NCBI GenBank assembly: GCA_001643675.2
Contig: LSRY02000006.1
Location: forward strand, 682,001-746,000
Origin: Monocercomonoides exilis PA203
Lineage: Eukaryota; Protista; Preaxostyla
DNA: 64,000 bases
Reading direction: 5' to 3'
Below, piece by piece: positions 19,901-63,719 of this stretch (positions are counted from its first letter, which is position 1; every line of letters begins with the position of its first letter). The position numbers and the translations under genes are program-made. Below the pieces are notes generated by a model. The model saw nothing but the letters and a program-made list of their open reading frames with translations. It ran no database searches and was not told where the DNA came from.

Positions 19901-22900
19901 TTAGAAGTGAGAGTTGTTGGATGCTCGTTGGGGATGTGTTCGTGCTCGGGGGTGAAGGGGAGAGGAGGAGGGGTGATGGTTGATGCACTTGACCCGAATG
20001 AGGGTGGAACCAGTGGATTTGGGCCTGTTGGGATAAGAATGGAGAATGTGAGGTTTTGGGGGAACGAGGCATTTGTGGGGAAAGACGTGTTCATCAGATG
20101 CGAGTCGATTGCCGAACAGATCAATGAGACATTGTTTGTGCTGGATATGAGCCAGGATGCCCTGAAATCCACGAACTCCATCTGTGGGTCAGACAAGGAA
20201 AGGGATGATGTTGATCTGATCCCTCTGATCACATTCTATTATGGCCAGCAGGTGTTTGTCTCATTGAGTGGAAGAGATGACAGACAATGTGGGGCACAGA
20301 ACAGTCCTTGCCTGAGCATTGGCAGTGCTGTGAAGCACATTCAAAGAGGAGTGGGGAATTCCATTTGGATTGATGGGGAAGGGGTGATTGGGGGAGAGTG
20401 TGTGATTGGGGATATGAATGTGAAGAGTCTGAAGAAGACTCAATCCACAATCCATCTTGATGGAAAGATGGAGGTTGTGGGGGATGAAGGGAGCGTGATC
20501 GTGTTTGTGAATGAGAGTGCTGTGGAGAAATGTGAATTCTTGTTTGGGTTGAGCTTTGAATCAGAGCATTCATCCATTGTGAAAGTGAAGAATGGAACAT
20601 TGGGGGTGAGTGAGTGTTGGTGGAAGAGCGTTGGAATGATGAAGCTTTTGAACAGCACAATTGTGGAAGTGGAGGGAGGAGAGCTGGAGATGGAGAAATG
20701 TGTTGTCAGCTGTGTTTGCACTTCACGAGAGATATTGTCAGTCTGTGAAGGGAGCAAGGCTGCGATATATCAGCTGAGGATGAGCGATATCGAGAGCGAG
20801 GATGGAGGGATTGTTGATGTGAAGAAAGCAAGGGTGGAGGCGAAGGAGATGTCGATGAGCAACATCACCAGACAGAACAGAGGGAGCATTGTGAAGATGA
20901 TGGAATGCACAGAAAGAGTGGATTTGATGAATTGCTCGATGAGGATGTGTTTGGGGAAAGAAGAGAGAGGATGGATGGTGAGTGTGTGGAACTGTGAGTG
21001 TGTGAATGTTGATTGTTGTGAGTTTGATGGAGAAGAGGAAGAGAATGAAGAGAGAACAAGAAATGAGCAGGATGAAGGAGAAAGAAGAGAGGAGATATGC
21101 AAGTGGAATGGCTCTATGGTTGAATTTGAGAAGAGTGAAGTTTTCTTGAAAGAATCAACAATTACAAATTCGTCAGAAGGAGGATTGTCAGTGAGTGGAG
21201 GAAATGTGGTGATTGAGAAAGGAGAGTTTGCGAACAACAACCCATCGATTGGAAAATATCCCTCAGCTCGGAGAAACATATTGTGTTCGGATTCTGCTCA
21301 GCTGAATATCATGAGCTTGAAGGGAGGAGATGGGGTTTATCCCAATTCATCGATGTGGATTCTGAATGATGGATGCAGTTTGAATGGGATTGTTGAGGAG
21401 CGAGCATCACCATTGTTCATCCCCACACTCCGATCGGTGGAGACAGAGGAGAAGGAAGGGGTGCTGGATGTTGTGTTCAGAGGCACACTTCTTCTGCCAT
21501 GCAACCTGTCGTTTCGCGTTGTTTCGTCAGTGGGGGATGTGGAGCAGGTGGAGACTCACGAGATAAGTGAGTCTGGGTTTGAGAGTGAAGAGGAAGTGCA
21601 TGGCACAATTGGGCTGGAGATGGTGAGGGGAGCAGAGGCGAGTGCGGAAGTGAGGGTGTGCATCTTGTTTGGAGATGGCCATTCTCCCTCGGCAACTGAG
21701 TCGTTCATCCTGAAGAACAGGAGCGAGACTGATCCAAAGGGAGATGAAAAGATTGTTGAAGGAGGAAAAGAAGGAAAATCGATATGGCCAATCATTGTGA
21801 TTATTATGGCCTTTTTTCTTTTTATAATTCTAATAATTGCGGTGATGTCAACTGTTCGATGGAGAAAGGTTAAGAATGAAGCAGAAGATCTGAGAGAGAT
21901 TGTGAATGATAATATCAGAAAGGATCCTAAGGCGTTTGAGATGGTGACGATGGAGATGTCGCCTGAAGAGCAATGGAGGAGAGCAGAGAGGGAGGCAGAG
22001 AAGAAGAATGATGAGAGGATGAAAAAAAGAATATATGATACGAATATGCAGCATTCGGAGTCATCAGAGCATCTTCTATCTGAGAGCGGATCGACTGAAT
22101 ATATTTTGGGGAGAGATTCAGACAAGATCCCTCAATGGATGCTGGAGAAAGATGAAGAAGAAGAGACAAGAAAAAGAACACCATCACCATCCATCTCATC
22201 CACTTCAACCATAGACACTTCAGACACTGACACAACATTTGTTCGAATGGAAGATATGTGCCCAACAACCTCATCCATGTCGAATCTGGTGGATGCAATG
22301 GCCTGTTCATCTCCTCATGAAAAGCTGATTGTGGATCTGAGGGATTCGCTGTTCATGTTGCTTCATGGGAGGAACGAGAAGAAAGAGATGGCGATTGGCT
22401 CTTTGGAGGAGAGGGAGCTCACAGCAGCCCAGATCCTGTTCTGGGTGGCTAATCTGGCACTCCACTCATTTGATGAAACGGAAGTTCCGCTTCAGTCGCT
22501 GAGCAGTCTGAGCCCGCACATTGTGCTGTTCTCAGAGCACATGGTGATCTGCATTGTGATGCACTCTGACTTATTGTCCGACGATTCAGATTCTTCATCC
22601 ATTTCTTCGTCAACTGTTGTGACATCTGCAAGTGATGACGATGAAGATTCCCTGCCCTCGTCTGCCTTTGAGGATGAGGATGATTTCAAAAAGGAGTGCC
22701 TGAGGTGGAAGGCGCCTGAGTTGCTGATCAACAAGAAGATGGGGGCAACCAAGGAATCTGTATCATTCTCGATCGGGATGATGTTGTGGGAGTGTCTGAC
22801 TCTTCAAATACCGTTTGGGGATTATGAGGCAGAGGTGGCAGGGCAGAAGATTGTGAATGGGGAGAGACTGGAACTGAGGAGCATTGAAACTTCTCAGTTT

Positions 22901-23077
22901 GTGCGAGTTGTGAAGTGCTGTGTGGCATGGAAAGCAGAAGACAGATCATCGCTGACTGAGCTTCGGAAAGAGTTTATCTGTTTTTTTCCAGCAGGCGCAA
23001 CAATGCTGACGATTACAGATGCAATCAGAATTGAGGAATTGAGCGGTGACAGTGAAGGATATACAAGAAACAAATGA
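13928..23077 (+). CDS. Giant single-pass receptor-like protein (~3049 aa): signal peptide, 5 Cys/GGG-rich beta-helix modules, TM, kinase-like (pseudokinase) tail
   Basis: Intronless ORF (track starts at TTG 13886; first ATG 13928, MNCLAFIICLQW). Repeated V...G.D...CG....PC.TI and GGG / N.A..G.DVF motifs, TM IWPIIVIIMAFFLFIILIIAVM, C-lobe motifs RWKAPE and SFSIGMMLWECLTLQIPF. Confidence 0.92.
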   Translation: MNCLAFIICLQWFSMDAANNEADKKEGSNELEKEIFQDSFISNEIQNRNTFEKNTIENKFHAYSVQNEDYDEGNSKNEFKCDYEYRKRRKPLGYIHEGKKHWSSNNGVEDSWIEGCLKMMNSSVLCVDVTIMDRTNNCVIEAEKKSCVELKRCFLSFGEENSPLKLTGSCAVLVNVSLASSIQHLHSIPPLFASERSENQFDHFGSISICSSCFSSFLVSRPPFLSSAFVESISLSNLDFFNISTIPAKTESLSTCQCGKATLMNSCSFHSVCDVYDGGIVPSLNNPLTSLTSSNTSFVGCCRTRNVEFIGSEEEKKYPGRQNETEDGQNTFILCEWNGSKASGTSTSATDGISSGGAINMCNLENGILFVSHCAFNDCSAYSYGGGIMCYLIKSVSIENNLFNSCVSEHDFGGGMYFYFIYSYFQISKCKIRKCVACNNGGGFFLHNFVFSESDSIETENDREGDALIFECDCISCSVTNVNGGGLCCFDLVSQFKMSSIRFIGCSAVTGGGGLHFRPERMSGPIDGIYCCFLFFHECRCTNSIPYGHDIQHIDAFNVFLKSGNPFHECYTTNADDQRVLYTYNSSGAYVSQLTEKKEWLKDGVMDIFVGVAGDNTNKWCGVNKLKPCKTIGFVMENHIPELISKIILMEGNHTNETTTIEIGTKKISVIGKGREMSAIGTGELSLTRALFRVTTGHLGLMHLGIDHNSSAGSSPSVVVVTGGSGSLSLEDVVITTSVSSGDYVMSSSVFVVPLSQLSMIDVEIKEMNISQSLLSEPVLSSFSSSSSALLLTTATSKESSLANITVKNVKQANGDGVVVAKSVAEEETFVVWNATFEDCECKRGSGGGIKIKLESSTSKFRMGETASSSEGTTKFNKTNCSGYGGGVMMWLTENSFDFEISSVSFMNCDAGLGGKDVFANGSKLESGTITTTKLNVGHNGSIYDELMGYDRNEEEMGIFPLNVFFDSFSGAAHVGIKKNGFGGFDSWFCGFDCFPCRTIAFAVETRFATGNKNITLDSGFELEEVVSMAGSYEWEVFCSFNKTDVNVRVPSGMTSLYLINVESKSSIKNIAFQIPHQLSGATSLIGLTSSSLTLTDCSVAHSSESTSSVAFGYSIVNAQSGSLKMDRFVIGGALVFGAHSAIEFSEGMESVACSGCNINGVKRNEGDGGWMKGKVGTSGTLTVDGCNVNECSCGGGKGGGTYVGLKGNGKVVVNGTSVIDRNKAENNGGNGGNGGRGGGMFLLMESEGCGLTIGQNVEFSKVNGNVAEYGKDVFVHCGSGVFLESKVNTSSFAFFDTSTIPSDVLKLSGSENGEESGVIPLFVYLCTMGTKVLVDGSGGNGMDHSHCGFEGFGCLTVDYCANSRLNESLNEIEVVSSSSIRDEIELSLFGVIISGRIVSPDRERMQVNVSDGGLATQDWLVGFSSSLTMRRLSFVVKGQLNPRRSVFIHSTSTINMTNCSVSFESGALTDGKIGYNMINIEGGELIIDGFVMEGGVTMNGKSPIAISNGVELEMLKSRVSGVEVIGEDGGCLNVGMKECGCVKIELSNFSSTCSGGSGMKGGGMMISVGSGGSFEMKNVKYSGCEVPREDGEDGGRGIGGGIFAELPHQMGIFVLEGMTFEGCNAWKGKKMFVSGWDLSKIANKEHFKWEMSEMELGSLDELCGWERKTTGEEGYVIPLVVYLWSNWSGDGFVSKDGGGDFSGCGYSEAPCSSIDHLISLRYEPLGEGESHISIVGSGFLSHSISFSSSLPPASQDSESQKVVIEGTKKGTAVIISDEDDENDMIGGSLISSGVSLTLSNLSFSNPNPNGHHEILIGSSGANICLSVVDCSFGTLNGMADAGFCVMKVNGGRVIVQGCSLDAVGQLRGFIAFSATATKEVIVEDVNISNVGVKERSLISMFEDEQTTGMKAKRGINRGESRHSNNEKVVIKVNGSSFTNITNGENRAGMLSVDSFESAMECVLEGCSVSSCRSEMSEEGGGMKVCLKRGELEVRVVGCSLGMCSCSGVKGRGGGVMVDALDPNEGGTSGFGPVGIRMENVRFWGNEAFVGKDVFIRCESIAEQINETLFVLDMSQDALKSTNSICGSDKERDDVDLIPLITFYYGQQVFVSLSGRDDRQCGAQNSPCLSIGSAVKHIQRGVGNSIWIDGEGVIGGECVIGDMNVKSLKKTQSTIHLDGKMEVVGDEGSVIVFVNESAVEKCEFLFGLSFESEHSSIVKVKNGTLGVSECWWKSVGMMKLLNSTIVEVEGGELEMEKCVVSCVCTSREILSVCEGSKAAIYQLRMSDIESEDGGIVDVKKARVEAKEMSMSNITRQNRGSIVKMMECTERVDLMNCSMRMCLGKEERGWMVSVWNCECVNVDCCEFDGEEEENEERTRNEQDEGERREEICKWNGSMVEFEKSEVFLKESTITNSSEGGLSVSGGNVVIEKGEFANNNPSIGKYPSARRNILCSDSAQLNIMSLKGGDGVYPNSSMWILNDGCSLNGIVEERASPLFIPTLRSVETEEKEGVLDVVFRGTLLLPCNLSFRVVSSVGDVEQVETHEISESGFESEEEVHGTIGLEMVRGAEASAEVRVCILFGDGHSPSATESFILKNRSETDPKGDEKIVEGGKEGKSIWPIIVIIMAFFLFIILIIAVMSTVRWRKVKNEAEDLREIVNDNIRKDPKAFEMVTMEMSPEEQWRRAEREAEKKNDERMKKRIYDTNMQHSESSEHLLSESGSTEYILGRDSDKIPQWMLEKDEEEETRKRTPSPSISSTSTIDTSDTDTTFVRMEDMCPTTSSMSNLVDAMACSSPHEKLIVDLRDSLFMLLHGRNEKKEMAIGSLEERELTAAQILFWVANLALHSFDETEVPLQSLSSLSPHIVLFSEHMVICIVMHSDLLSDDSDSSSISSSTVVTSASDDDEDSLPSSAFEDEDDFKKECLRWKAPELLINKKMGATKESVSFSIGMMLWECLTLQIPFGDYEAEVAGQKIVNGERLELRSIETSQFVRVVKCCVAWKAEDRSSLTELRKEFICFFPAGATMLTITDAIRIEELSGDSEGYTRNK

Positions 23078-23447
23078 ACTGTGAAATCAAATGACTGGGG
23101 AGGCTGATGAGGGAAAGGGAAGGAATCGAAGAATTGATTGGGAAACGTTTTGTATTTTTAATATTATTTATGGATGAGTGGAGAGAGTGTTGTTCTGATA
23201 AAATGATAACAAGCAGTTTGTTCATCTGAACAAACATTATGTTTTGATTTATATATGCATGGATATGTAATATATGTAGACTTTTGTATGTCTTTCTGCA
23301 ATTTGCTTTTCAGAGAAGGTTTTGAAGTTGTGCTTTGTGAACCGAGTTTTGAATTTTGTTCAATGTGATGAGGTGTTTGATTGAATACACAACAATTTTT
23401 CTATGTTAGAGTATTTTCAAAAAATATTTAGTTTAATTTATGTGCTA

Positions 23448-24429
23448 GGGTTACACTTTTACTCTGACCTATATTTTACCCCCACCCTTTTTTTGAAGAG
23501 CTGGCTACGGCTTAATACAAGCCTGTAGCCAACAAAAAATAACTAGAAATGTTTATTTTAATAAATTTAACTTATGCAGAAAAATTTTTTTAACAATTTT
23601 TTTTTAACTTTGAGATCTCGGTATTTTTTAATTTTATTTTTTGATCATTAAATTGATGGTCTTTCCATGAATATAAAATTCTAGAAGTTTCAAGCTACAC
23701 CGTCATTACACATCTTATCCTTTTTATTGTTTTTATAACTTTTCACATTTCACAAGTTTCTTTTTCACTTGTTTTCTCATTTCATCCACTTTTCGAAAAA
23801 ATGCTTTTATTGATTGTATATATAACTATTTTAATATTACATAAGCTGTATCTCATTTGAAACTCTATATATTGTTGAACACTCACGTAATTTTTTGCTG
23901 AAAAAATGTTACTGGTCGGAAAAATCAAAACTTCCGAAATTGATGTTTTTCATTTTTCCATTTCAAATCAAATTTGCAAAGCTTTTTTGTATATCTGCAT
24001 AATTAACATTATAACATATATAAAGGATAATCTTAAAATTTTTAACAAAAATTCATCATTCTTAAAAAATTTTCATTTTTTCGAAAAGTGGATGAAATGA
24101 GAAAACAAGTGAAAAAGAAACTTGTGAAATGTGAAAAGTTATAAAAACAATAAAAAGGATAAGATGTGTAATGACGGTGTAGCTTGAAACTTCTAGAATT
24201 TTATATTCATGGAAAGACCATCAATTTAATGATCAAAAAATAAAATTAAAAAATACCGAGATCTCAAAGTTAAAAAAAAATTGTTAAAAAAATTTTTCTG
24301 CATAAGTTAAATTTATTAAAATAAACATTTCTAGTTATTTTTTGTTGGCTACAGGCTTGTATTAAGCCGTAGCCAGCTCTTCAAAAAAAGGGTGGGGGTA
24401 AAATATAGGTCAGAGTAAAAGTGTAACCC
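23448..24429. mobile_element. Non-autonomous foldback/MITE element FB1 (982 bp), 356-bp terminal inverted repeats, TA target duplication
   Basis: TA|GGGTTACAC...GTGTAACCC|TA; arms 23448-23803 and 24074-24429 look perfect by eye; empty site in the paralogous flank near 63624. Confidence 0.93.
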
Positions 24430-24916
24430 TATGATCATCATAAACATGTGACAGAATTCTTTCATTTATGAAAAAAACTGGGAATTGTTATAAACTTTAC
24501 TACAATCGCATTATTATAAATCAACCGAAACTATGCAAATAATTACAGAAGAATTTTAAAAATTGAGAAAAATAATAGTTTGAGAAGAATGGAACAAAAT
24601 TCATAAAGCAAAATATTTTGTCCTAAATAATAACTGCGATCTGTTCAGCCCTTTTAATCATTAAGAAACTTCACACTTCTTTTTCATATCACATCTTTTC
24701 AATTCATTTCTTACTTATTCTTTCAAATTTCTTTTTATTACACAATGTTTTTATCAGTTGAAATAAATACATTAAAAGCTAAATTGTGTTTTTGCTGATA
24801 GCTTGCAATTTTTTTACAATATTCCAATGGTTGAATAACTATTTCCAATGCCTATCAGTTGTTTTGGTGTTGGAAATAGACACAAATCTTCTTTTTCATA
24901 CACTTTTTGGAAGTTA

Positions 24917-26391: not shown

Positions 26392-29300
26392 TTAATTTTT
26401 CATAAATAGACTGTGAAGTACCCTCTTTCTTGCTGTAATGAAAGCAGCAAGCAGCTTATCAAAACATGGGCATGCAGAAAAAAGCATGAATGTAAGTTCA
26501 ATTGATGAAGATGGTTTTTGTAAGAATGGAGTTGGTTGGACGAACACCACATGGTGAGTTTGTTCTTTATTTGCTTTACAAATTGCTTCTTTATCTTTTT
26601 GATTTGTGAATATTGATTTTGTTGTATTAACCCACGTTGATCTTCTTTCTGCTTTTCTTCTTTGGGATTGCATTTCCCATTTTTGCCTGAGAATTTTAGT
26701 ATGCTTCCTTTGAGTACTCTTTTCATTTGATTCATCAATACTGTCTCCTTCAAGCCAGCTAACTTCGTTGGAATCGCCAATGCGAGACTGTTTTTTGATA
26801 CATATTTTTTTATTAAATGCAAAGTGAATGGATAAACAAAAGTCACTCTGAACCTTACGTTCTGTGAGTAGCGAGGCTACTATGCTGTTATTTCTCCGAA
26901 TTGTTGAAAGACCTTTCCAGAAAAGAAAAGTTTCTCCAAAAAGTGCATGCTCCGTTGAGGATGGAAAGACAAGTGCTGATGAATGTTTCAACTTAGCTTG
27001 ATGAGGCAGAATGAGAAATGAAGGTAGAAGAGGCGTGATAGAGGCATCTTTCTGACTCTTTAACGATTGAGAGTTCGAAAGAAATCGAAGGACAGTGCTT
27101 TGAATTGATGAGAATGTTCCAGAAAAAGATGGAAGGAAAAAAAGAGATATAAGATCGAGAGATAGCTTCACTAAACCTTCAGACTTTTTTATGAAATAAG
27201 GCTTTCCCTCTGAAAAGTATCTAACAATTGAGCTCCAAAAGAAATTGACAAAATGCATTAACAAGCGTATTTGCGATGGTCTCGAACATAAAATAGAGAG
27301 AGGAAGTCGTGCTGAATAAGATGGCAGAGATTTTGGTACAGAAAAAGAGCGAAAACCGAAATCGTTTCGAGATTCAGAGCGAAGTGGAGGGGGTGGAATT
27401 GGAGGAGGGCGAACAGAATCAGATTGACTTCCAAAAGATGAAGAAAAAGCATTTGTAACAGAAGTGGCAGGAGAAGGAGGCGGAGAATATATGATTGAAT
27501 CTTGTGAAGTGGTGAGTGTGGACGATGGAGAATGAACAATAACACAGTAATCATCCGATCCAGAAGCAGGGGGAGAGGTAGATCTTTTCTCAAGAGCAGT
27601 AGATGAATAGCTAGATGTGTGTGAATTGTTAGATTGATGAATAAATAATGAATGAGGATCTGAAACTTGAAGGAGCAAAGAAGATGGTGTGAATTGAGAA
27701 GTGTAGTGATACAGCAAACAAGATAATTGAATTGGAGTTGACAAAGAGGAGCGCTGTTGAGAAGACGGGTATGGAAATCCAGATTGGTGAACTGATTTAA
27801 ATTGAGTTTGCTTATTTTGAGAAAAATCTAGATGCTTTCTGCATTCTAAGCATCCACACCCAAACCGATGAAGCATTAAAAGGTCATGAAGTGTTACTGA
27901 CGTGTGCTGAAATGAAGAGCTGGTGAGAGTGGGATGGAAATCATAAGTGGAGTGAAATATGGCAACTGAACTTGATTCTCCTTTATCATTTGCATTTTTA
28001 ATCCCAGTATATGAATGTCCATCTATAGCATTCTTGCCATTTGATAACTTTGAAGATTCTAATGAGGTTAGAAGCAATGACTGGGATTGCATCGAAGACT
28101 GTTGGGATGCTTGGAAAAGTAGCTTAGCAGAGGAATTTATAGAAGAAATCAGCGTTGGTGCAGAAATTGATAAAAGAGATTCAACATTCAATTCTTGGAG
28201 AATAAACGTTGATTTACTAATATTTGATAGAAATAGAAGAGACTGAGATAAAAGCACAGTCTGAATGCGTTTGAGGAAGAAAGAGCAGCGCGGTTTGTTC
28301 CACTCACTTTTCAAGCAAGAGTTTGATCGCATTGCTGATGCTTTTGTTTCTCCTTCTTCCAATTCAAAGAATGAAAGATAATCCTTTTCAAAAGCAGCAA
28401 AGCACAACTTTGATTGCTGCATTTCCATGTCTTTTTGAATCCGAGACGAAGAAATCTTCGGTAGCAAAATAAATGGATAAAATTGCATGTCGTTTGAATT
28501 GAAGATCTTTTCCAACGAAGACAACGTATCTTTAATTGAAAACGAACAACTGAATCTTGGAGCAGAAGCAACATTAACAACAGTCTCTGATGGTACATTT
28601 ATCACTTCTCCAATTTTTGGTGTTTGTCGTGCACCTGAAAGATGATTTTCCATCAAAGCATTGCTCCACTTTTGTTGTTTTCTTATCGCTTTAATCTCTG
28701 AAGCTTGTATTTTTGTATTGGCATTCGAAGTTGTATTTGAACACTCATAATCTGTTTCAACATCTCTTTCAATCTCTGTTGTTCTTGCCACAGTTCCGAA
28801 AAGTGTGACCACAACTTCCGCAAAGGATTTAAGAATATCCATTTCTGAGCAAGGAAATCTGTATTGAATTGAGTTGTGCTCTTTTGGAAAAGAGACTGGT
28901 AGGCCATATTTTGTGACATCAGATAAATATTTCATATCCAACTTTGCAGAAGAGGAAGATGAATAAGTCAACGTTTCTGTTGTAATCTGCTGCCGGCGTG
29001 GCTTCAGATGCTCGCGCTGCATCTTTCTATGATGAAAACTCCTTAACTTTTCGATATCAGCATCGGCTGCTCTTTGTCTTTTGCTCTTTTCTTCTTCCTC
29101 CTCACTCTCTTCCTCTTCTTCTTCTTCCTCCTCTTCCTCTTCCTCTTCCTCTTCTTCACTTTCCTCTGTTTCCTCGGTTTCCTCCGTCTCTTCCGTTTCT
29201 TCTTCGTATTCACTTTCTTCTTCTTCATTTTCCTCCTTTGTTGGAATTTTTCTGCTTTTGCTAAGCTTACTTCCTGTATACGAGTTACTTACATGTTTTT

Positions 29301-44984: not shown

Positions 44985-45104
44985 TATAATTTCATATATT
45001 CACTTATGAAATTGAATAGATGTTTATAATCAGCATTATTCAATGAAGCTGCATCAGTGTATTATTAGGAATAGCATATTTGCAACAAAAAGGATAGAGT
45101 TATT

Positions 45105-47101: not shown

Positions 47102-47178
47102 GAGAGAAAGAGAAAGAGAAAGAGAGAAAGAAAAAGAGAGAAAGAGAAAGAGAAAAAGAGTGAGAGAGAGAGATAGAG
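47085..47178 (+). repeat. AG-rich microsatellite (AGAAAG/AG)n at the truncation point of the receptor fragment
   Basis: Direct reading of the sequence. Confidence 0.85.
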
Positions 47179-50313: not shown

Positions 50314-51159
50314 ATGATATTTTATTTATTTGCTTCAGTTATTGCAGAATCAATTGTTGAAACAGTTAACAACGATCCAAGCTCCACATGGGTTGCAATT
50401 GAATATCCAAGAGAAGTTATCACTTTAGCAAAGATGAGAGCAATGCTTGGTGAAGAAGCTCTTCCTATCGAAGACGTTGAATACGTTGAACCAAACAATG
50501 TCCCAGAGAACTTCGATGCACGTGAACAATGGCCAGGAAAGATTTATCCAGTGCGCTCACAAGCTTCTTGCGGATCATGCTGGGCCCACACTGCATCAGA
50601 AGCCATTGGAAACAGATTCTCAATCAAAGGATGCGGAAAGGGAATGCTTTCAGTCCAAGATCTCGTTTCATGCGACAAAAGTGATTCTGGCTGCAAAAGT
50701 GGTTCTGGACCAATAGTTACAAAATGGCTTGCTTCAAATGGAGTCACAACTGAAGAATGCCTCCCATATGTTTCTGGAAATGGACGTGTTCCATCATGTC
50801 CAACAAAATGTGCTAATGGATCAAGAATTGTTCGTTACAAATATGAGAAAGCTGAGACTTACACAGTCAAGAATGTTCAAGAAGAATTGATGAAAAACGG
50901 TCCAGTTTACTTCCGTTTCACAGTTTATACAGATTTTATGAACTACAAGAGCGGAATTTATCAACACAAATCAGGATACCAAGAAGGAGGACATGCTGTA
51001 CTTTTGATCGGATGGGGCGTTGAAGATGGTGTTCCATACTGGCTTCTTCAGAACTCATGGGGAACAGGGTGGGGAGAGAAAGGTCACTTTAAGTTCATCA
51101 GAGGAAAAAATGATTGCGGATGTGAACAAGGATTCTACGCAGGACCTGTTAAATGCTAA
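50314..51159 (+). CDS. CTSB: Cathepsin B-like cysteine protease (papain family C1A), 281 aa
   Basis: Signal peptide and short propeptide, FDAREQWP, QASCGSCWA (catalytic Cys), LSVQDLVSC, GPV, YKSGIY, GGHAV (His), WLLQNSWG (Asn). Confidence 0.96.
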   Translation: MIFYLFASVIAESIVETVNNDPSSTWVAIEYPREVITLAKMRAMLGEEALPIEDVEYVEPNNVPENFDAREQWPGKIYPVRSQASCGSCWAHTASEAIGNRFSIKGCGKGMLSVQDLVSCDKSDSGCKSGSGPIVTKWLASNGVTTEECLPYVSGNGRVPSCPTKCANGSRIVRYKYEKAETYTVKNVQEELMKNGPVYFRFTVYTDFMNYKSGIYQHKSGYQEGGHAVLLIGWGVEDGVPYWLLQNSWGTGWGEKGHFKFIRGKNDCGCEQGFYAGPVKC

Positions 51160-55400: not shown

Positions 55401-55544
55401 TTGATATGACAAATGGAAATAAAATCATAGAATTGGAACCTGAAAATGGAAATGGTGAAGGAAATAATATTTTTTTTAATTCCGCAAGATTATGGGATAT
55501 TATCAGAAATTTGGGTTCAAAAACCCATAATCATCATTGAAACA

Positions 55545-58500
55545 ATGATTCCCTTCGTTTTTCTTTCATGTTTGTTCTCAATTATTTGTGGAAAAGATTG
55601 CCATGAAAGGTTAAGCTGTGAATGTTCTGCTTTATACGTTTCTGAGACGGAGAAGAATGGTATTTTTGTGAAGAAAAGTGTTGTTCGAATGTTCTGCGAA
55701 ATATACAACTCATCAGCTGAATTAAAGTGGATGTTGCTTGAAAACCCAGATAATTGTGTGATGTTCGAAATAAAAGCAGGATCATTGCTGCAGGTTGAGG
55801 GAAGTGTGTTTGTGAGAGACAATGAGTGGAATGGGAATTATGTGAGGAATGGAGGGACATGCAGGCTGATAAACACGAGTTTGGGTGTTGGAAATGGTCA
55901 GGAATGTGGAATGATGGAGAGTGTGGTGAAGATGGAAGGAGGTGATTTGTCTTCGTTGCTTGTGAGAAACAGTGAATTTGAGAATGCTGTGTTTTGTGGG
56001 AGTGGAGGAAGTTTTCTGAGGGATGGTTCAGGAAGTTTTGAAGGAATCCAAAACTGTGTGTTCGCGAATATCACAAAGAAATTTAACGAGACAGAGGAAA
56101 TACAAACTGGAAAAGAGAGGATGATGAGGATGAGTTCAATGGAAGATTGTGATGTTGAAAGATCGATGAATGTTCTTGAGAGAGGGATTGTGAGTGGAAC
56201 AGAAGGATCTGGCTCATTTTTGTGCAACAATTGCACATTTGTTCGGAATGAAAGAGTGGATAGGAAAGTGAGAAATACAGATAGAGTTGAAACCACCGAA
56301 TCTCTCAACTTCACGAATGCTGAATGGATTGAATGCTCTGCAGAATGCGGTGGAGCGCTGTATGTGCATGACAATTCAAATGCAACACTGAATGTTGAGA
56401 ATTCGTCATTTGAGAGATGCAATGCAACATCAACAAGGGGAGGAGGTATTTTTGTTGAGAACGTTGGAGTGTGTTCTGTGAATCACTCCCGATTTAAAGA
56501 ATGTTACTGTGTGTCTTCAGATAACCACGGAGGAGCTGGAGTGGAAATTTTAGGAATCATCGTTCAACCGTTTGTTTTTAATTGCATTTTTGAAGATTGC
56601 TGGTCTGGAAATGATGCTGGTGGTTTGGGGGTGTGGACTTCAAAAACAACAAAAACGAAAGATTGCATTCTTGATTGCTCTTTTAAGAATTGCAGTGGTC
56701 ATATGCAAGGAGATTCTGATGGAGGAGGTTTTATTAGCTGGTATCCAATCGATAAAGTTGTTGTGAGAAACTGCCTTTTTCAAGATTGTCATTCAGATGA
56801 TCGTGGAGGAGGGGTATCTCTCAATTTAACAGATTATCATGGAGAACTGTTATGGTTTTGCTTTTTTCACAATAACAGTGCTCCACATGGAAATGATATT
56901 TTTGTTTATGATTATTTTGCAGATTCTCAACTGGTTTGGTGTTATTCAACAAGGACAGAAGGAGTGAGATATTATGCGGGTGGAGATAAGAGCGAATGGT
57001 TGCCGAACAACGGTGGAAAATGCAGATTTGTTGCTTCAACTCAAATTCAGGCAAATGCGAAAGACACATTCAGCTGCGGATTGAACGAAAGTTATGCATG
57101 CTTATCAATCAGCCATTGTTTGTCCCAAATGATTTCTGGGTTTGTTGAAGAAATCAAGGTGCTTTCTGGAACAGTTGTGGAAGGAAAAGGAGTTGACGTT
57201 GGAGAGAAAACAATCAGTGTGAATGGAGCTTCACCATATGGATCTATCATTGAGACAAAATTTGAGGCAAATGGATTGAGTCTATTCTGTATTGGAACAG
57301 GAAAATTGAATGTGAGTGATCTATCTGTGATTCACAATACGTCATTTGAAAACAATAGACAAAGCAGACTATTTGAGGTTGAGGGAAGCGGGTTGATGGA
57401 TGTGAAGAGAATGAACATTTCAATGGATTCTTCTCATTCAGAGGAGAGGAGCATTCAGAATTCGCTTGTAAAAATCGATGATGGAGAGTTGAAGATGCAA
57501 GATGTGAAATGGGGCCAAACATTCATAACCACAAATGTGATATCTTTGTCTCTGGAGGCAACGGTTTCGTTGACTTTGGATAACTGCACATTTAGCAACA
57601 TTGTGAGAACAACAGCTGGATCATCGCTGATGTGTGTGGGTGAAGGGTCATATTCGATAACTCTTGAAGGATGCAGAATTGATGGGTGTGGGAATGAAGA
57701 CTGTGAGTTTGGAGGGGGAATGATGGTTGAAGCGGGAAGTGGGAGTTCATTGAAGATGAATGGAGGCATTGTGAAGAACTGTTATGCCTCAGCCACTCAA
57801 GGGAGGGGAGGAGGAATTGGGCTGAAAGTGAGAAACGCAAATGCAGATTTTCTGATTTCATCAGCATTTGAAGGAAACATGGCCAGATGGGGAAGTGATA
57901 TTTTTGTTGACTCGATCGATCTGGAATCAACAACAAGAAGTGAGAAGATCACTTCATTGACAGCTTCATTGGAAACAAAGAGCAAGATGCAGGGATATGA
58001 AAATGGGGATGAATCGTTCCCAATTCCATTATGTGTCTATTTGTGGAACAACTTTTCAGGATCTGCATTTGTTGGAGGAGGATCATTGAGTCATGATTTT
58101 TCGAAGTGTGGATTTGAAGAGTTTCCATGTTCCACAATCACGAAGGCAGCATCTGTCCACTTTGAAGGGAAGAAAAAAGATGTTGCTCTTCTTGAACCAT
58201 TTGCCTTTGAGGATGAATTGAGGTTGACTTCGAATGGATGGAGCATCAAAGGAAAAGTGGAAAAAATAAAGTGTGATGTTTCTGATCAGAAAGAGGGAAC
58301 ACAAAATGGATTGATAGAGAATACAATCGCTGCATCTGTGACAGGTATTGTGTTTTCAATGAAAAAGTCACTGATTTTTCATGAAAGTGTGTTTGAGTGC
58401 TGTTCAGGGAAACTTATTCTCATCAAATGTGGGATGGAAGGAGGCACTGAAGCAATTTCTACAGTGCTTGTGAAGGCTATTGGAGGGGCTGTAGAATTGA

Positions 58501-61500
58501 TTGAGTTTGGATCGGAGAGTGCTGCCAAATGGGGTTCATCGATATTTGTTGTTGAAGGTCATTCTGGAAGCATTCCTTCGATAAATATGACGAAGAGCGA
58601 TTTTGGAGAAATCACATTTAACGACGGGTGCGTTATTGAGTGTCATAATGGAAATATCGAGAAGATAACAGGATGCTCCTTTTCATCGATTTCTCGTTCG
58701 AAGGGAAGTGGAGGATGTATAAGTGTTTCAAACAATGAGGATGAAAATGGAGATTATAAAGTGGAAATATTTGACTGCACATTTGAAGGGTGTTCTGTTG
58801 AAGAAGAGGGAACTGAGATTGGAGGAGGTGCGTTCTTTTTTGAAGCATCAACAAATACGAACCTGTTGATGAAAGAATGCAAGTTTTATTGTTGCACAGC
58901 ACAATTTGAAGAGGGAAGTGTTGGATATGGAGGAGGAATTATGCTGAAGATACTGAAAGAAGAAGAAGCAGGGTTTGTGATATCCTCACCTGTTTTTTCA
59001 TCTGATAAGCCAAACAATGCAAAGTTTGGGAAGGACCTGTTCATTTCATCTCCATCGCTTGCCAAGAGCATCAAGAACGAAACTCTGCCATTTGTGAAAG
59101 ACAGATTGGAGATGCTAACCGAAGACTCAATGAGAGGGTATGATGGAGGAGACAGAGAGTGTGCAATTCCCCTGATCTATTTCTGGAAAGCGATTGAATC
59201 GAGTGTGCATGTTGCAAGAACAGGAAACAATGTGGTTGTGTGTGGATTGGAAGAGTATCCTTGTGATTCTGTTGATTATGGGACGAAAAGAGGCAGTAGT
59301 TTGGGGATTGAATCGATTGCAGTTCAGGGACTATGCGATGTGAGGAATGAAATGTGCATGAGTGGAATGAGACTAGAAGGAACAAATGGTGAAACAGATA
59401 AAATCAAATTTGTGAAAGAGATTGAAGGGAGTAGTGGTGCTGTTGTTGAGTGCAAAGGAATTGTTCAATTCAAAGAAGTGGGGATTCTGATCCCTAGTGC
59501 CTTCGATAACGAGGCAAACATCCTCATCCAGACAGGCACAGATGCAATCAAAACGACTATTGCAGGATGTTCAATTCACATAAGTGACAATGCTGAAGGT
59601 GAATTGACATTTGTATTGATAAGTGCCACAAAAGGAATTGTTTCTATTGAAAAGGCAAAGATGGCAGGGTTGGCATCAATGCATGAGATAATGAGCATAT
59701 CAGTTGGATGTGTGATAACCATGAGCGATGTTTCCTTTGAAGAAATTTCATTGAGCAGGAAAAGTGCAATTGTGATGAATGAAAATGAGATTCCAGAAAA
59801 TGGAAATGATAATGCAGAAGAAGAGTGGAATGTTCTGTTTGAGCAATGTTTATTTTTGAATGTGAAGTACAGTGTGTCAAACAACCCTTCGTTGCTTTGC
59901 TGTGATGTGCAGAATGAAGTGAGATTGAAAATGGAGAACTCCACAATTGACGAATGCGGATCGACAAGCTCGAATGAAGGAGGAGGAATGTTTTTCCTTC
60001 TCAACGAGAAAGGGAGTTTGGAGATGAATCACACAAAGATGACAGACTGTTTCTGCTCGAACAATGGGAGAGGAGGAGGGTTGTTTTTGAAATCAATGAG
60101 CGCCACACAGAAGGCATTGCCATTTGTGCTGTCAAACATCACATTCAAAGGGAATGTTGCACTGAAGGGGAGAGACATGTTTGTGAAGTGCACTGATCTT
60201 GACTCGCAAATAAGTGAATCACAGTTTCTGATAAATTTTGGAGAGCCGTTTGTGAAGGATCTGGCTATTTGGGGGTGCGCAGTAAATGATTATGGGGATG
60301 AAGAGGATCTGTTGGGGAGGGTGTATGTGTTCAGGAGCGAATTCATATTTGTGTCTTCGATTGTGGGGAACAGCAGCGACAGCAAGAACTGTGGGGAAAT
60401 GAAGGGTGCATGCTCATCGCTGAATATTGGTGTGAGTCACGTTATTCCTTCAGATTATTCACAGTTGTATATCTGGAATGAAACAACACTAACTGGTTCG
60501 TGCTCCGCTCAGAAGGTGACGATCAAGTCGATGGAATCGAATAGAAATTCAGAGATAAAAGTGCGTGAGATCAAGTTGGGCGATAAAGAAGCTGTGACAA
60601 CTTTGGGGTCTGTTCGATTTGAGAAAGTTTCATTTGTTTTTGGTGGAATTCAGAATGTTGTCTGCTCGTCCTTAATTCTCCAATTGAATGGATCTCTTAT
60701 TCTCGAATCTGTTTCATTCTTGTCAGAGAGCAGAACAACGGAGAATTCACACACCCTTTATAATTTTTCTCTTCTTGTTGTTGAAAATGGGATATTTGAG
60801 GCAGAAAAGTGTAATGTTGATCATTTAAGATTATTGAAGCCTGTGTTCATGATATTGAATTCAGAAAGAGCAACTTTCGAAGAGCTAACGATTTGCAATG
60901 TTCAATGCACAAGTTCAGTGATTGATTGTGGAAAGAGTGAGAAAATAAGAATTTCGAAGTTGGCAGCCGCAAACATCACTCTCCAAGGCGAGTGTTTGAT
61001 TTCGATTGGCCATGATCCTTCTTTTTCGCTTTCATTGTTGCATTCGTCGTTTGAACGCATCAGCCATTCAGCATCAGATGCATGCATTGTTCACTTGTCG
61101 AACATGAGATTTGCATTTGAAATGTTCAACTGCTCTATTTGTGATTGTACATCAGACTCTGAGAAAGGAAGTCAGGTGATGATTTCCTCATCAAATAACA
61201 TCCTGATGGAATTGTGCAAGTTTGAGGGAAACACAACATCTGAAGCAGAAGAAATGAATGGAAATACTGATAAGGTCTGCCAGTGGAATGGGTCAGTTGT
61301 TGATTTCACAAGAAGTGAAGTTTTCTTGAAAGAATCAATTATTGCAAATTCATCGGAAGGAGGATTGTCAGTGAGAGGAGGAAATGTGGTGATTGAGAAA
61401 GGAGAGTTTGTGAACAACAACCCATCGATTGGAAAATATCCCTCAGCTCGGAGAAACATATTGTGCTCGGATTCTGCTCAGCTGAATATCATGAGCTTGA

Positions 61501-63254
61501 AGGGAGGAGACGGAGTGAAAGATGATTCATCGATGTGGATTCTGAATGAAGGATGCACTTTGAAGGGGATTGTTGAGGAGCGAGCATCGCCATTATTCAT
61601 ACCCACGCTGCGGTGGGTGGAGACAGAGGAGAAGGAAGAGGTGCTGGATGTTGTGTTCAGGGGCACACTTCTTCTGCCATGCAACCTGTCGTTTCGCATT
61701 GTTTCGTCGGTGGGGGATGTGGAGCAGGTGGAGACACACGAGATAAGTGAGTCTGGGTTTGTGAGTGAAGAGGAAGTGCATGGCACAACTGGGCCGGAGA
61801 TGGTGAGGGGAGCAGAGGCGAGTGCGGAAGTGAGGGTGAGCATCTTGTTTGGAGATGGCCATTCTCCCTCGGCAACTGAGTCATTCATTCTGAAGAACAG
61901 GAGCGAGACTTATCCAAAGGGAGATGAAAGGATTGTTGAAGGTGGAAAAGAAGGGAAATCATCATGGGCATTGATTGTAATTGTGCTTGTTGTTGTTCTT
62001 TTGATTATTCTAATAATTGCGGTGATATTCATTGTTCGATGGAGAAAGCAAAAGAGAAGAACGGAAGAGTTGGAGATAATTGTGGAAGACACAGTGAAGA
62101 AGGATCCGAAGGCGTTTGAGATGGTGACGATGGAGATGTCACCAGAGGAACAGTGGAGGAGAGCTGAGAGGGAAGCTGAAAAGAAAAATGATGAGAGGAT
62201 GAAGAAGAGAATAAATGATACGAATATGCAGCACTCAGAGTCATCCGAGCATTTACTGAGTGAGAGTGGTTCCACAGAATATATCCTTGGAAGAGATTCA
62301 GACAAGATCCCTCAATGGATTCTGGAGAAAGATGATTATGAGGAAACAAGGAAGAGAACTCCTTCTCCATCCATCTCATCCACTTCAACTACTGATTCAG
62401 ATTCCACATTTGCTCGGAGAGAGGATCTGTGCCCAACCACCTCATCCATCTCGAACTTGGTGGATGCAATGGCCTGCTCATCTCCTCATGAGAAACTGAT
62501 TGTTGATCTGAGGGATTCACTGTTCATGCTGCTTCATGGAAGGAACGAGAAGAAGGAGATGGCGATTGGCACTCTGCAGGAGAGGGAGCTGACAGCTGCT
62601 CAGATCCTGTTCTGGGTGGCGAACGGTGCACTTCACTCATTTGATGAAATGGAAAATCCGCTCTCTTCTCTTGACAATCTGACTCCTCACATTGTGTTGT
62701 TCTCCGAGCACATGGTCATTTGCTTTGTCATGCGCTCCGACTTCTCTTCTGATGATTCGGACTCATCATCTATCTCTTCATCAACTGTTGTGACGTCCGC
62801 AAGTGATAATGATGATGATGATGACTCTCTTCCCTCGTCCGCGTTTGAGGATGAGGATGACTTCAAAAAAGAGTGCCTGAGGTGGAAGGCACCTGAGCTG
62901 CTGATGAACAAGAAGATGGGTGCAACCAAGGAGTCGGTGGCATTTTCGATCGGGATGATGCTGTGGGAGTGTCTGACGCTCCAGATTCCGTTTGGTGATT
63001 ATGAGGCAGAGGTGGCAGGGCAGAAGATCGTGAATGGGGAGAGACTGGAACTGAGGAGCATTGAAACTTCTCAGTTTGTGCGAGTTGTGAAGTGCTGCGT
63101 GGCATGGAAAGCAGAAGACAGGCCATCACTGACTGAGCTTCGGAAGGAGTTTATCTGTTTTTTTCCAGCAGGTGCAACAATGCTGACGATCACAGATGCA
63201 ATCAGAATTGAGGAAGCGAGCAGTGAGAGCGAAGGATACACAAAAAACAAATGA
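55545..63254 (+). CDS. Giant single-pass receptor-like protein (~2569 aa): signal peptide, 4 beta-helix modules, TM, pseudokinase tail
   Basis: Intronless ORF (track 55446-63254; ATG 55545 gives the signal-like MIPFVFLSCLFSIICG). Same architecture and highly similar C-terminus to 13928-23077. Confidence 0.92.
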   Translation: MIPFVFLSCLFSIICGKDCHERLSCECSALYVSETEKNGIFVKKSVVRMFCEIYNSSAELKWMLLENPDNCVMFEIKAGSLLQVEGSVFVRDNEWNGNYVRNGGTCRLINTSLGVGNGQECGMMESVVKMEGGDLSSLLVRNSEFENAVFCGSGGSFLRDGSGSFEGIQNCVFANITKKFNETEEIQTGKERMMRMSSMEDCDVERSMNVLERGIVSGTEGSGSFLCNNCTFVRNERVDRKVRNTDRVETTESLNFTNAEWIECSAECGGALYVHDNSNATLNVENSSFERCNATSTRGGGIFVENVGVCSVNHSRFKECYCVSSDNHGGAGVEILGIIVQPFVFNCIFEDCWSGNDAGGLGVWTSKTTKTKDCILDCSFKNCSGHMQGDSDGGGFISWYPIDKVVVRNCLFQDCHSDDRGGGVSLNLTDYHGELLWFCFFHNNSAPHGNDIFVYDYFADSQLVWCYSTRTEGVRYYAGGDKSEWLPNNGGKCRFVASTQIQANAKDTFSCGLNESYACLSISHCLSQMISGFVEEIKVLSGTVVEGKGVDVGEKTISVNGASPYGSIIETKFEANGLSLFCIGTGKLNVSDLSVIHNTSFENNRQSRLFEVEGSGLMDVKRMNISMDSSHSEERSIQNSLVKIDDGELKMQDVKWGQTFITTNVISLSLEATVSLTLDNCTFSNIVRTTAGSSLMCVGEGSYSITLEGCRIDGCGNEDCEFGGGMMVEAGSGSSLKMNGGIVKNCYASATQGRGGGIGLKVRNANADFLISSAFEGNMARWGSDIFVDSIDLESTTRSEKITSLTASLETKSKMQGYENGDESFPIPLCVYLWNNFSGSAFVGGGSLSHDFSKCGFEEFPCSTITKAASVHFEGKKKDVALLEPFAFEDELRLTSNGWSIKGKVEKIKCDVSDQKEGTQNGLIENTIAASVTGIVFSMKKSLIFHESVFECCSGKLILIKCGMEGGTEAISTVLVKAIGGAVELIEFGSESAAKWGSSIFVVEGHSGSIPSINMTKSDFGEITFNDGCVIECHNGNIEKITGCSFSSISRSKGSGGCISVSNNEDENGDYKVEIFDCTFEGCSVEEEGTEIGGGAFFFEASTNTNLLMKECKFYCCTAQFEEGSVGYGGGIMLKILKEEEAGFVISSPVFSSDKPNNAKFGKDLFISSPSLAKSIKNETLPFVKDRLEMLTEDSMRGYDGGDRECAIPLIYFWKAIESSVHVARTGNNVVVCGLEEYPCDSVDYGTKRGSSLGIESIAVQGLCDVRNEMCMSGMRLEGTNGETDKIKFVKEIEGSSGAVVECKGIVQFKEVGILIPSAFDNEANILIQTGTDAIKTTIAGCSIHISDNAEGELTFVLISATKGIVSIEKAKMAGLASMHEIMSISVGCVITMSDVSFEEISLSRKSAIVMNENEIPENGNDNAEEEWNVLFEQCLFLNVKYSVSNNPSLLCCDVQNEVRLKMENSTIDECGSTSSNEGGGMFFLLNEKGSLEMNHTKMTDCFCSNNGRGGGLFLKSMSATQKALPFVLSNITFKGNVALKGRDMFVKCTDLDSQISESQFLINFGEPFVKDLAIWGCAVNDYGDEEDLLGRVYVFRSEFIFVSSIVGNSSDSKNCGEMKGACSSLNIGVSHVIPSDYSQLYIWNETTLTGSCSAQKVTIKSMESNRNSEIKVREIKLGDKEAVTTLGSVRFEKVSFVFGGIQNVVCSSLILQLNGSLILESVSFLSESRTTENSHTLYNFSLLVVENGIFEAEKCNVDHLRLLKPVFMILNSERATFEELTICNVQCTSSVIDCGKSEKIRISKLAAANITLQGECLISIGHDPSFSLSLLHSSFERISHSASDACIVHLSNMRFAFEMFNCSICDCTSDSEKGSQVMISSSNNILMELCKFEGNTTSEAEEMNGNTDKVCQWNGSVVDFTRSEVFLKESIIANSSEGGLSVRGGNVVIEKGEFVNNNPSIGKYPSARRNILCSDSAQLNIMSLKGGDGVKDDSSMWILNEGCTLKGIVEERASPLFIPTLRWVETEEKEEVLDVVFRGTLLLPCNLSFRIVSSVGDVEQVETHEISESGFVSEEEVHGTTGPEMVRGAEASAEVRVSILFGDGHSPSATESFILKNRSETYPKGDERIVEGGKEGKSSWALIVIVLVVVLLIILIIAVIFIVRWRKQKRRTEELEIIVEDTVKKDPKAFEMVTMEMSPEEQWRRAEREAEKKNDERMKKRINDTNMQHSESSEHLLSESGSTEYILGRDSDKIPQWILEKDDYEETRKRTPSPSISSTSTTDSDSTFARREDLCPTTSSISNLVDAMACSSPHEKLIVDLRDSLFMLLHGRNEKKEMAIGTLQERELTAAQILFWVANGALHSFDEMENPLSSLDNLTPHIVLFSEHMVICFVMRSDFSSDDSDSSSISSSTVVTSASDNDDDDDSLPSSAFEDEDDFKKECLRWKAPELLMNKKMGATKESVAFSIGMMLWECLTLQIPFGDYEAEVAGQKIVNGERLELRSIETSQFVRVVKCCVAWKAEDRPSLTELRKEFICFFPAGATMLTITDAIRIEEASSESEGYTKNK

Positions 63255-63719
63255 ACTGTGAAATCAAATGACTGGAGAGGTTGATGAGGGAAAGGGAAGG
63301 AATAGTAGATTTGACTGGGAAATGTTTTGTTGTTTTACAGAATATTAGTTAATGAATAGAGAAAGGGTTGTTCCGATAAAATGATAACAAGCAGTTTGTT
63401 CATCTGAACAAACATTATGTTTTGATTTATATATGTATGGATATGTTTAATATGCAGACTTTTGAATGTCTTTCTGCAATTTGCTTTTCAGAGAAGGTTT
63501 TGAAGTTGTGTTTTGTGAACCGAGTTTTGAATTTTGTTAAATGTGATGAGGTGTTTGATTGAATACACAACAGTTTTTCTATGAAAGAGTATTTTCAAAA
63601 AATATTTTGTTTAATTTTTGTGCTATAATCATTATATATTTTTATATATTCAGATTAGCATTTTTTTCAAATTTGAACTTATTGTATTTGTTGGCGAAAT
63701 GGAATAATTTCGAAGTGAA

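Follow-up and report, generated by a model that had tools for sequence, protein, structure and literature searches.

How do two large genes whose outer parts cannot even be aligned as DNA come to be nearly identical over the part that lies closest to the membrane, and again over their very ends? The question is raised by a 64,000-nucleotide stretch of the genome of the protist Monocercomonoides exilis (C58:682001-746000; hereafter the window, in whose own positions all coordinates are given unless a contig is named), which holds two putative receptor genes, A and B, together with the N-terminal part of a third, gene C. A first-pass annotation had proposed that A and B are mosaics, in which patchwise recombination swaps variable ectodomains onto a homogenised stalk and tail, possibly as a shuffling system with pseudogene fragments of foldback elements as donors. 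We find that patchwise recombination among the paralogs is well supported, by silent-site divergence that is not uniform along the genes, by conflicting trees, by the pairwise homoplasy index (PHI) and by a test of identical fragments. As to its nature, the sequences make it very probable that we are looking at ordinary non-allelic gene conversion and crossover among linked paralogs, over evolutionary time and with no dedicated system.

A self-BLAST of the window aligns 21098-23447 in A with 61278-63625 in B at 87.5% identity over 2363 bp, and the 24-mer that had been quoted for the onset of the likeness occurs exactly twice, at 21134 and 61314 (0 occurrences expected by chance). When identity is followed in 60-nt sliding windows, it lies at 38-55% upstream of 21104, i.e. 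the DNA is not alignable, reaches 78% at 21104 and then remains at 92-98% across 21134-21730, so that the abrupt passage from divergent ectodomains to near-identity is real. Further downstream identity falls to 63-77% in the transmembrane (TM) region (21764-21900), wanders between 65 and 93% through the cytoplasmic tail, returns to 92-98% from 22808 up to the stop codon (the last 270 coding bases), and is 83-100% in about 370 bp of 3' flank, where the homology ends at 23447/63625. These last two figures agree with the near-identity that had been noticed for the C-terminal coding end and its flank; as a description of the whole tail it holds from 22808 onwards and fails between the TM helix and 22800, where 60-nt windows give 72-92%. 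The end of the A/B homology is marked by a foldback element inserted at a TA in the 3' flank of A, with B representing the empty site, and beyond this element there are about ten similar bases and then none.

The ectodomains of A and B are homologous at the protein level only (24-42% identity). Seventeen full-length genes were reconstructed on their contig, and these fall into three classes by ectodomain: class I, of about 3070 amino acids (aa), comprises A and seven others; class II, of about 2600 aa, comprises B, the genes at 402 kb and 452 kb and, more distantly, the 111-kb gene and gene C; and class III, of about 4120 aa, has four genes. Full-length protein identity inside a class is 76-94% (79-81% between A and four other class I genes of the contig, and 76-79% between B and its close relatives at 402 kb and 452 kb), as against 25-45% for ectodomains of different classes. 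A and B are thus members of different ectodomain classes and not one gene pair with exchanged heads. The resemblance of the N-terminal half of B to gene C, to which the first-pass annotation had drawn attention, exists over residues 211-1017 at 38% aa identity (38-43% in gene C/B comparisons), and reflects only the ectodomain class. Of the 17 copies, 15 have a long open frame that begins at a start codon of its own; the exceptions are g965k, truncated to 1439 aa, and g284k, which is without its front. Within class I, the membrane-distal stretch 14951-15740 of gene A is hypervariable, with DNA identity of 53-68% and 1.1-1.6 synonymous substitutions per synonymous site (dS), against 0.07-0.4 in the remaining ectodomain; because the ratio of nonsynonymous (dN) to synonymous rates, omega, stays near 0.3, the stretch would seem to be older or imported and not positively selected.

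Both genes belong to a very large family. The 647-aa C-terminal module of A has at least 68 copies at 70-91% aa identity, in open frames of 2,500-4,200 codons, and its 18 best matches all lie on A's own contig. A conserved juxtamembrane 24-mer occurs 915 times in the genome at three mismatches or fewer (0 times when reversed as a control), and this motif count suggests a family of roughly 900 copies, fragments included. Among the database hits, the best 120 of 548 are all M. exilis MONOS_ proteins, annotated as "uncharacterized" or as "putative protein tyrosine and serine/threonine kinase". The largest gene family described for this organism, and the one to which A and B belong, is that of the protein tyrosine kinases, in the tyrosine kinase-like group, with 332 members (PMC6759080; PMC8767320), and unclassified repeats overlap genes of the tyrosine kinase family (PMC8767320). 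Term searches in these two papers gave no occurrence of "transmembrane" in PMC6759080 and none of "gene conversion" in PMC8767320, and those passages on the kinase family which they returned are silent on ectodomains and mosaicism. A literature search combining Monocercomonoides with "gene conversion" returned nothing relevant.

Silent sites show that the segments of these genes differ widely in age. When 27 genes are aligned by codon over the module and 1.4 kb of ectodomain, the Nei-Gojobori (NG86) medians among the 16-17 genes of the A/B contig are dS 1.70 and dN 1.05 in the membrane-proximal ectodomain, 0.20 and 0.077 in the stalk, 0.67 and 0.27 in the TM helix with its juxtamembrane region, 0.72 (0.715) and 0.054 in the first part of the cytoplasmic tail (tail 1), and 1.0 and 0.37 in its last ~90 codons (tail 2). 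The stalk median rises to 1.49 among genes of other contigs. For pairs of the same class (I or III) the ectodomain dS is 0.06-0.2, and tail 1 has dS 0.63-0.85 at an omega of 0.04-0.06. These values show that the stalk is homogenised on the A/B contig across all ectodomain classes, and that tail 1 is kept by purifying selection (omega about 0.05) and is old at its silent sites. Of the "homogenised stalk and tail" first proposed, then, the stalk stands; the tail, at dS 0.6-0.85, is a mosaic of short patches.

The trees of the segments are likewise incongruent. In the maximum-likelihood (ML) tree of the ectodomain, genes group by class across contigs (B falls beside C47 and C36 genes, for instance, and the 111-kb gene beside those of C9, C55 and C40); in the ML tree of the stalk, all genes of the A/B contig come together, plus one gene of C50, whatever their class; and the ML tree of tail 2 contains three types, each of which mixes ectodomain classes. 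By the approximately unbiased (AU) test, a one-contig clade is rejected by the ectodomain data (p=2e-48), clades of class II, IIb and III are rejected by the stalk data (p=8e-61, 3e-5 and 0.0013, respectively), and clades of class III and II are rejected by the tail-2 data (p=1e-69 and 5e-177); the test was uninformative on tail 1 alone (p 0.03-0.46). PHI gave z=-63 for the module, -17.6 for the stalk, -8.8 for tail 1, and -38.5 and -3.9 for the ectodomains of class I and class III, with 0 of 1000 permutations as low as the observed value in each segment, and in a GENECONV-like test of the longest identical fragment 95 of 120 pairs were globally significant. Both tests are our own implementations and not the published GENECONV, RDP or GARD programs. 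The cleanest single event is an identical tract of 502 bp (equivalent to 21640-22141) in the class II gene at 402 kb and the class I gene at 434 kb, which lie 32 kb apart; identity is 95% upstream of it and 77-89% downstream, and the 3' flanks of the two genes are unrelated. Since the tract is an internal patch, it would represent gene conversion and not crossover. All this argues firmly that the paralogs are true mosaics made by recombination, and that the exchange took place between intact genes. Uniform dS with congruent trees, which would have told against the first-pass annotation, is not what these genes show.

Where the exchanges begin and end can be seen from the correlation of pairwise-distance matrices between successive 90-nt windows. 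The ectodomain up to about 21175 behaves as one block (r about 0.9), correlation is lost (r about 0) over 21176-21266, neighbouring windows are nearly uncorrelated ("confetti") from 21266 to 22800, and from 22808 as far as the stop codon there is a second block (r 0.8-0.9), with a second hard boundary near 22800. Over all inter-class pairs the change-points fall at 21093-98, 21134, 21149-82, 21200-11 and 21227-36, i.e. at least five positions in a 140-nt zone, which bears out the expectation that breakpoints would cluster at the boundary of the stalk, just after the CxWNGS motif. Gene A and the 596-kb gene bear a class II-type patch that is missing from the six other class I genes, and it is this patch that makes the A/B onset at 21134 so abrupt. 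When A and B are painted in 60-nt windows, the nearest paralog switches every 60-200 nt, at 93-100% local identity and with all three classes contributing. Gene C is not homogenised in its stalk (0.33-0.68 against A), and several of its tail windows reach 0.93-0.97, the painting showing tail patches common to C and its neighbours A and B.

A breakpoint cluster had been expected at the TM helix as well, and there the explanation turns out to be different. The dip reflects a hypervariable helix, with 88 distinct sequences among 95 proteins and some TM types common to several contigs, followed by a family-wide dimorphism: the 25-residue juxtamembrane patch (21851-21925 in A, 62031-62105 in B) is V-type in 64, Q-type in 25 and hybrid in five of the 95 proteins. 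Both forms occur on most contigs, without chromosomal structure (z=1.2), unlike every adjacent segment.

Such structure is present elsewhere in the module. The A-type stalk is found at 91% identity or more in 18 places on the A/B contig and one on C50, whereas three other copies are at 85-87% and all the rest at 77% or below; a C9 stalk used as query finds mostly copies on C9 and C55, graded between 80 and 90%. Among the 95 proteins, which come from 22 contigs, identity within and between contigs is 0.72 vs 0.57 for the stalk and 0.52 vs 0.39 for tail 2, with a slight difference for tail 1 (0.91 vs 0.87) and none for the juxtamembrane patch (0.74 vs 0.73). On the A/B contig itself, Mantel tests against physical distance give r=0.59 for tail 1 (p<0.001), r=0.31 for the stalk (p=0.008) and r=0.26 for tail 2 (p=0.013); ectodomain distance has no such correlation (r=-0.01). 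This argues strongly that exchange is biased to the same chromosome and depends on distance.

How could such a pattern arise? Homology-dependent DNA repair, using mostly genes of the same chromosome, would leave patches wherever it ends in non-crossover conversion, and crossovers or long tracts may have given rise to the 3' block formed by the last 90 codons and their flank. Three strata are seen: the ectodomains evolve as separate classes, with recombination restricted to members of a class; the ~600-bp stalk, with a predicted immunoglobulin (Ig)-like domain at its end, has been homogenised across all classes of the contig; and the TM helix and tail swap patches of between tens of bases and about 500 bp with a large number of partners. 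The sharp 5' boundary may simply be the place where identity becomes too low for strand exchange to proceed into the ectodomain; a boundary of this kind would be self-reinforcing, without need for a dedicated signal or enzyme. As an outcome, ectodomain classes, TM types, tail patches and 3' ends with their flanks would be continually re-assorted.

Several points weigh against this account of ordinary conversion and crossover, or at least limit it. Within classes, the combination of a young ectodomain with an old tail fits two scenarios: either the genes duplicated recently and their tails were then overwritten, or the ectodomains continue to be homogenised inside the class. The DNA-level tests cover 27 genes and the protein-level tests 95 proteins on 22 contigs, out of ~900 copies, and all sequence results come from one assembly of one strain, for which the eight public runs used consist of short unitigs (70-355 bp), too short to bridge the junctions or to measure expression. 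The clades submitted to the AU test were defined after the alignment had been seen, which weakens the formal p-values, although the margins are very large. Regional differences in rate can also inflate tests that permute sites, such as PHI and the fragment test.

The alternative that survives best, although we regard it as very unlikely, is a programmed diversification in which silent cassettes, transposon-borne fragments among them, are copied into expressed genes at defined junctions. The junctions are indeed tightly clustered after CxWNGS, but they occupy at least five positions and do not mark one signal. The family is huge and variable in its outer parts, and RNA-library contigs match A-specific stretches exactly, as one would like to see for expressed genes of such a system; yet nearly all copies reconstructed on the contig (the 15 of 17 noted above) have a long open frame and a start codon each, unlike promoterless cassettes grouped around a single expression site. 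Copies become less similar the farther apart they lie on the chromosome, as untargeted repair predicts, and the exchanged tracts are themselves diverged (stalk dS 0.1-0.2), which implies an evolutionary rather than a somatic time scale. Among the contig genes studied we found none of the features of dedicated switching, be it a single junction signal, a silent archive or an expression site, and the analogy with cassette-based antigenic variation is not supported for them.

Receptor fragments do reside in transposons, and the one present in the window had been suggested as a possible donor. A composite element (Table 1), a candidate for a Pack-type (gene-fragment-carrying) cut-and-paste transposon, encloses a foldback nested at 43987-44987 and, at 46144-47120, a dead 977-bp fragment of a receptor gene with stalk, TM and juxtamembrane sequence. 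Near the TM helix B resembles this fragment slightly more than A, as had been observed, in two windows out of four (0.74 against 0.70, and 0.87 against 0.78), and it does so because B and the fragment both carry the Q-type juxtamembrane patch, as does gene C, A being V-type. Intact genes of the contig come closer to B in each of its four TM and juxtamembrane windows, however (0.81, 0.97, 1.00 and 0.88, against 0.74, 0.50, 0.87 and 0.77 for the fragment). The fragment as a whole is only 66-68% identical to A and B, where full-length neighbours reach 97-100% in their best windows, and this speaks against element-borne donors. Its best genomic matches, at 82-85%, are on C42, C25, C41, C69 and other contigs, with none on C58, and no second copy of the element carrying the same fragment was found in the genome matches. 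Nor has the fragment visibly received recent patches from its neighbours, since no window exceeds 0.87 identity to A or B. It is therefore an old relic of another sub-lineage and did not serve A or B as donor. Foldback elements of several unrelated families, resembling miniature inverted-repeat transposable elements (MITEs), are present, with arms of about 360 bp and flanking TA, including a further pair at 49345-49556/63722-63934. Near the composite element, two adjoining open reading frames (ORFs) of 283 and 264 aa (40977-42626, minus strand) probably represent a broken hAT transposase; the first of them matches the hAT C-terminal dimerisation domain weakly, short of the Pfam cut-off (E=5.6e-4).

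One may also ask whether selection alone, without recombination, could have produced genes with a conserved stalk and tail and a rapidly evolving ectodomain and TM helix. This is very unlikely indeed: as sole cause it is refuted, and it survives as a contributor to the conservation of the tail and the variability of the TM helix. Tail 1 is strongly purified, as its omega indicates, but this most constrained segment has a higher dS than the stalk. The helix is free to vary within hydrophobic residues and the junction falls at a domain boundary; selection on proteins nevertheless leaves unexplained that dS differs 3.5- to 8-fold between adjoining segments of the same genes, that conservation of the stalk is confined to the A/B contig, that non-coding flank is co-conserved with tail 2, and that the segment trees are mutually incompatible and the genes contain identical internal tracts.

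It is extremely improbable that the mosaics stem mainly from unequal crossing-over and segmental duplication, palindromic duplication included, that swap whole 3' ends, even though the 3' ends themselves fit such a process well. Each tail-2 type travels as a block with its own flank: type 1 (A, B and three other genes) has 155-370 bp of flank in common, type 2 (eight class I and III genes) at least 1413 bp at 92-99.9%, a stretch for which the ORF listing shows no convincing gene, and type 3 384-433 bp. Two gene pairs form the arms of large inverted duplications on C58. One, L007/L008 (C58:234473-239380 and 243960-248867, 7.4 kb apart), is ~100% identical over the 4.9 kb fetched, one of its copies being truncated to 1156 codons; the other, L011/L013 (C58:268604-273520 and 282521-287431), is a convergent class I/class III pair whose 3' ends are 100% identical over at least 1.7 kb. 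Many further inverted pairs of close neighbours, equal in score, are found on C9, C55, C7 and C16. The tail-2/flank type is also tied to the orientation of the gene, types 1 and 2 comprising 11 plus-strand and one minus-strand gene and types 3 and 4 four minus-strand genes out of four, among the 16 contig genes compared (Fisher p=0.003, post hoc). Exchange of whole ends leaves internal patches such as the 502-bp tract unexplained, however, and equally the near-zero correlation of adjoining 90-nt windows over 21266-22800. Crossing-over and duplication are better regarded as another mode of one and the same process, with the 3' block as its target.

An assembly artefact, in which collapsed or mis-joined repeats yield chimeric gene models, is just as improbable, for although the family is highly repetitive, with unclassified repeats overlapping its genes (PMC8767320), and the unitigs do not span the junctions, the common tracts are 87-98% identical rather than 100%, with private differences in each copy, mosaics of the same kind are seen in 16 separate ORFs of 2,600-4,100 codons, all intact and free of frameshifts, the earlier 454-based annotation already contains many of these gene models (as MONOS_ proteins), and the A-specific TM, tail and flank-MITE junction stretches are matched with 0-1 differences by unitigs from two DNA data sets (2016 and 2022), both of the sequenced strain. 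Gross mis-assembly of A is thus argued against. As for RNA, the exact matches of library contigs are to A's private TM region (21781-21865) and to 23201-23555; these bulk RNA-library contigs suggest that the gene A sequence is transcribed. The second of them runs from the 3' flank of A into the foldback element. A joint from 21362 to 21936, seen in a single contig with a 20-nt side, was disregarded.

Returning to the genes themselves (Table 1), inspection of the sequences of A and B finds a single hydrophobic stretch of 23-25 residues followed by RWRK, consistent with a putative receptor-like, single-pass surface topology. The ~100 residues preceding the helix are predicted with good confidence (predicted local distance difference test, pLDDT, 82-90) to form an Ig-like beta-sandwich, whose best matches are the IPT/TIG domains of NF-kB, plexin and Met (Z 8-9, against a stated background of 7-8 for the tool), so that the membrane-proximal stalk domain is predicted to be Ig-like and is given no more specific name here; the first half of the stalk model (residues 1-106) has pLDDT <50 and is not interpretable. 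In the tails of A and B, the kinase profiles PF07714 and PF00069 match at profile positions 161-259 only, i.e. the C-lobe from the APE motif onward (for gene A, PF07714 at positions 162-257 of 258), and kinases in the PDB align solely to tail residues 255-363; comparison with Pfam and the PDB did not detect a complete kinase domain with N-lobe, catalytic loop and activation segment. An AlphaFold2 model of the tail, made from an alignment of 15 paralogs, was unusable (mean pLDDT 39), and no conclusion on a pseudokinase fold is drawn from it. The coding strand of the receptor genes has a very strong G-over-C skew of 0.3-0.48 per 2-kb window (16000-22000 and 56000-62000), which produces long spurious antisense ORFs. 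Elsewhere in the window there are a gene for a papain-family cysteine protease (50314-51159, plus strand; PF00112, E=8e-57), two adjoining ORFs matching a major-facilitator transporter (11069-12541, minus strand), and a Ser-rich ORF of 3815 aa (26392-37839, minus strand) that is unrelated to the receptors and without an informative domain.

Table 1. Receptor genes, their segments and the foldback elements, in positions of the window
Feature	Position	Strand	Description
Gene A	13928-23077	+	Class I, 3049 aa, intronless ORF; Gly-rich repeat ectodomain, stalk, one TM helix, tail
Gene B	55545-63254	+	Class II, about 2570-2600 aa, intronless ORF; architecture as gene A
Gene C (N-terminal 1630 codons in window)	3-4901	-	3056 aa in total, extends past the left end; distant class II-like
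5' junction zone	21093-21236	+	Just after the CxWNGS motif; class-specific ectodomain passes into common stalk
Homogenised stalk	A 21134-21750, B 61314-61930	+	Membrane-proximal half predicted as Ig-like (IPT/TIG-like) beta-sandwich
TM helix and juxtamembrane patch	A 21764-21910, B 61944-62090	+	TM helix hypervariable, patch dimorphic
Tail 1 (cytoplasmic)	A 21911-22800, B about 62091-62980	+	Protein strongly conserved, silent sites old, fine-scale mosaic
Tail 2 (last ~90 codons) and 3' flank, type 1	A 22808-23447, B 62985-63625	+	Inherited as a single block
Foldback MITE	23446-24431	.	Arms 23446-23803 and 24431-24074, 358 bp, 100% identical; TA at both ends
Composite element	43360-48163	.	TA-flanked; 361-bp inverted ends (43360-43720/47803-48163), 96.7% identical

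Several well-studied families invite comparison. One is that of the var genes (PfEMP1) of Plasmodium falciparum, a large family of big single-pass surface proteins, as the M. exilis family is predicted to be, with a hyper-diverse outer part and a conserved TM and cytoplasmic part, whose members are mosaics made by non-allelic recombination, with exchange structured by chromosomal location and orientation. The M. exilis genes differ in having no introns and no obvious subtelomeric restriction, being spread along a 2-Mb contig, and their outer part is a Gly-rich, beta-helix-like rod instead of DBL/CIDR domains; they are not known to be expressed in a mutually exclusive way. M. exilis is a gut commensal of chinchillas and not a known immune-evading pathogen. 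Segmental conversion bounded by conserved flanks is also seen in the mosaic variant surface glycoproteins (VSG) of Trypanosoma brucei, in vlsE of Borrelia and in pilE/pilS of Neisseria. In those systems silent and often broken donors are copied into a single expression site at high somatic frequency, whereas in M. exilis exchange is between intact genes, the single broken fragment examined did not serve as donor, and the tracts have diverged to a degree that points to an evolutionary time scale.

The variant-specific surface proteins of Giardia and the transmembrane kinases of Entamoeba also combine a variable ectodomain with a single TM helix and a C-terminal part that is very conserved, the latter having kinase or pseudokinase tails as well, although the ectodomains of these families consist of Cys-rich CXXC repeats and their members are smaller by a factor of roughly 5 to 10; we know of no report of a chromosome-private homogenised stalk in either. 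Finally, in clustered receptor-kinase and resistance-gene families of plants, such as Xa21 of rice and Cf of tomato, breakpoints concentrate at a short, highly conserved stretch, recognition parts are re-assorted with signalling or flanking parts, and the recognition domains escape homogenisation. These plant genes encode leucine-rich repeats, with an active kinase, and belong to far smaller families in tandem clusters, whereas the M. exilis genes lie 30-100 kb apart.

The findings illustrate an evolutionary process that is well known, and not a new mechanism. In the passages of PMC6759080 and PMC8767320 that list it as the largest of the organism, the family appears only as "tyrosine kinases". 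For annotation it matters that repeat maskers hit these genes, that trees built from whole proteins of the family are meaningless, and that a conserved tail is not evidence of recent duplication. By a rough estimate, from ~900 motif hits of ~9 kb each in an 82-Mb genome, nearly a tenth of the DNA of what was the first eukaryote known to lack mitochondria may belong to this family. It is even conceivable, although we think it unlikely, that the stalk-TM-tail module is itself a selected "recombination handle", by which recognition domains, TM types, tails and 3' regulatory flanks would be continually re-assorted on each chromosome, thanks to a near-identical stretch kept in receptor classes that otherwise cannot be aligned. 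If that were true, and if such exchange happened at appreciable frequency during clonal growth, a culture would have a shifting receptor repertoire without any dedicated enzyme. What emerges for the organism is a picture of how a eukaryotic receptor repertoire is assembled and its diversity maintained, with outer classes that remain isolated from one another, one stalk homogenised per chromosome, and a tail, its kinase putatively dead, that behaves as a family-wide pool of short patches.

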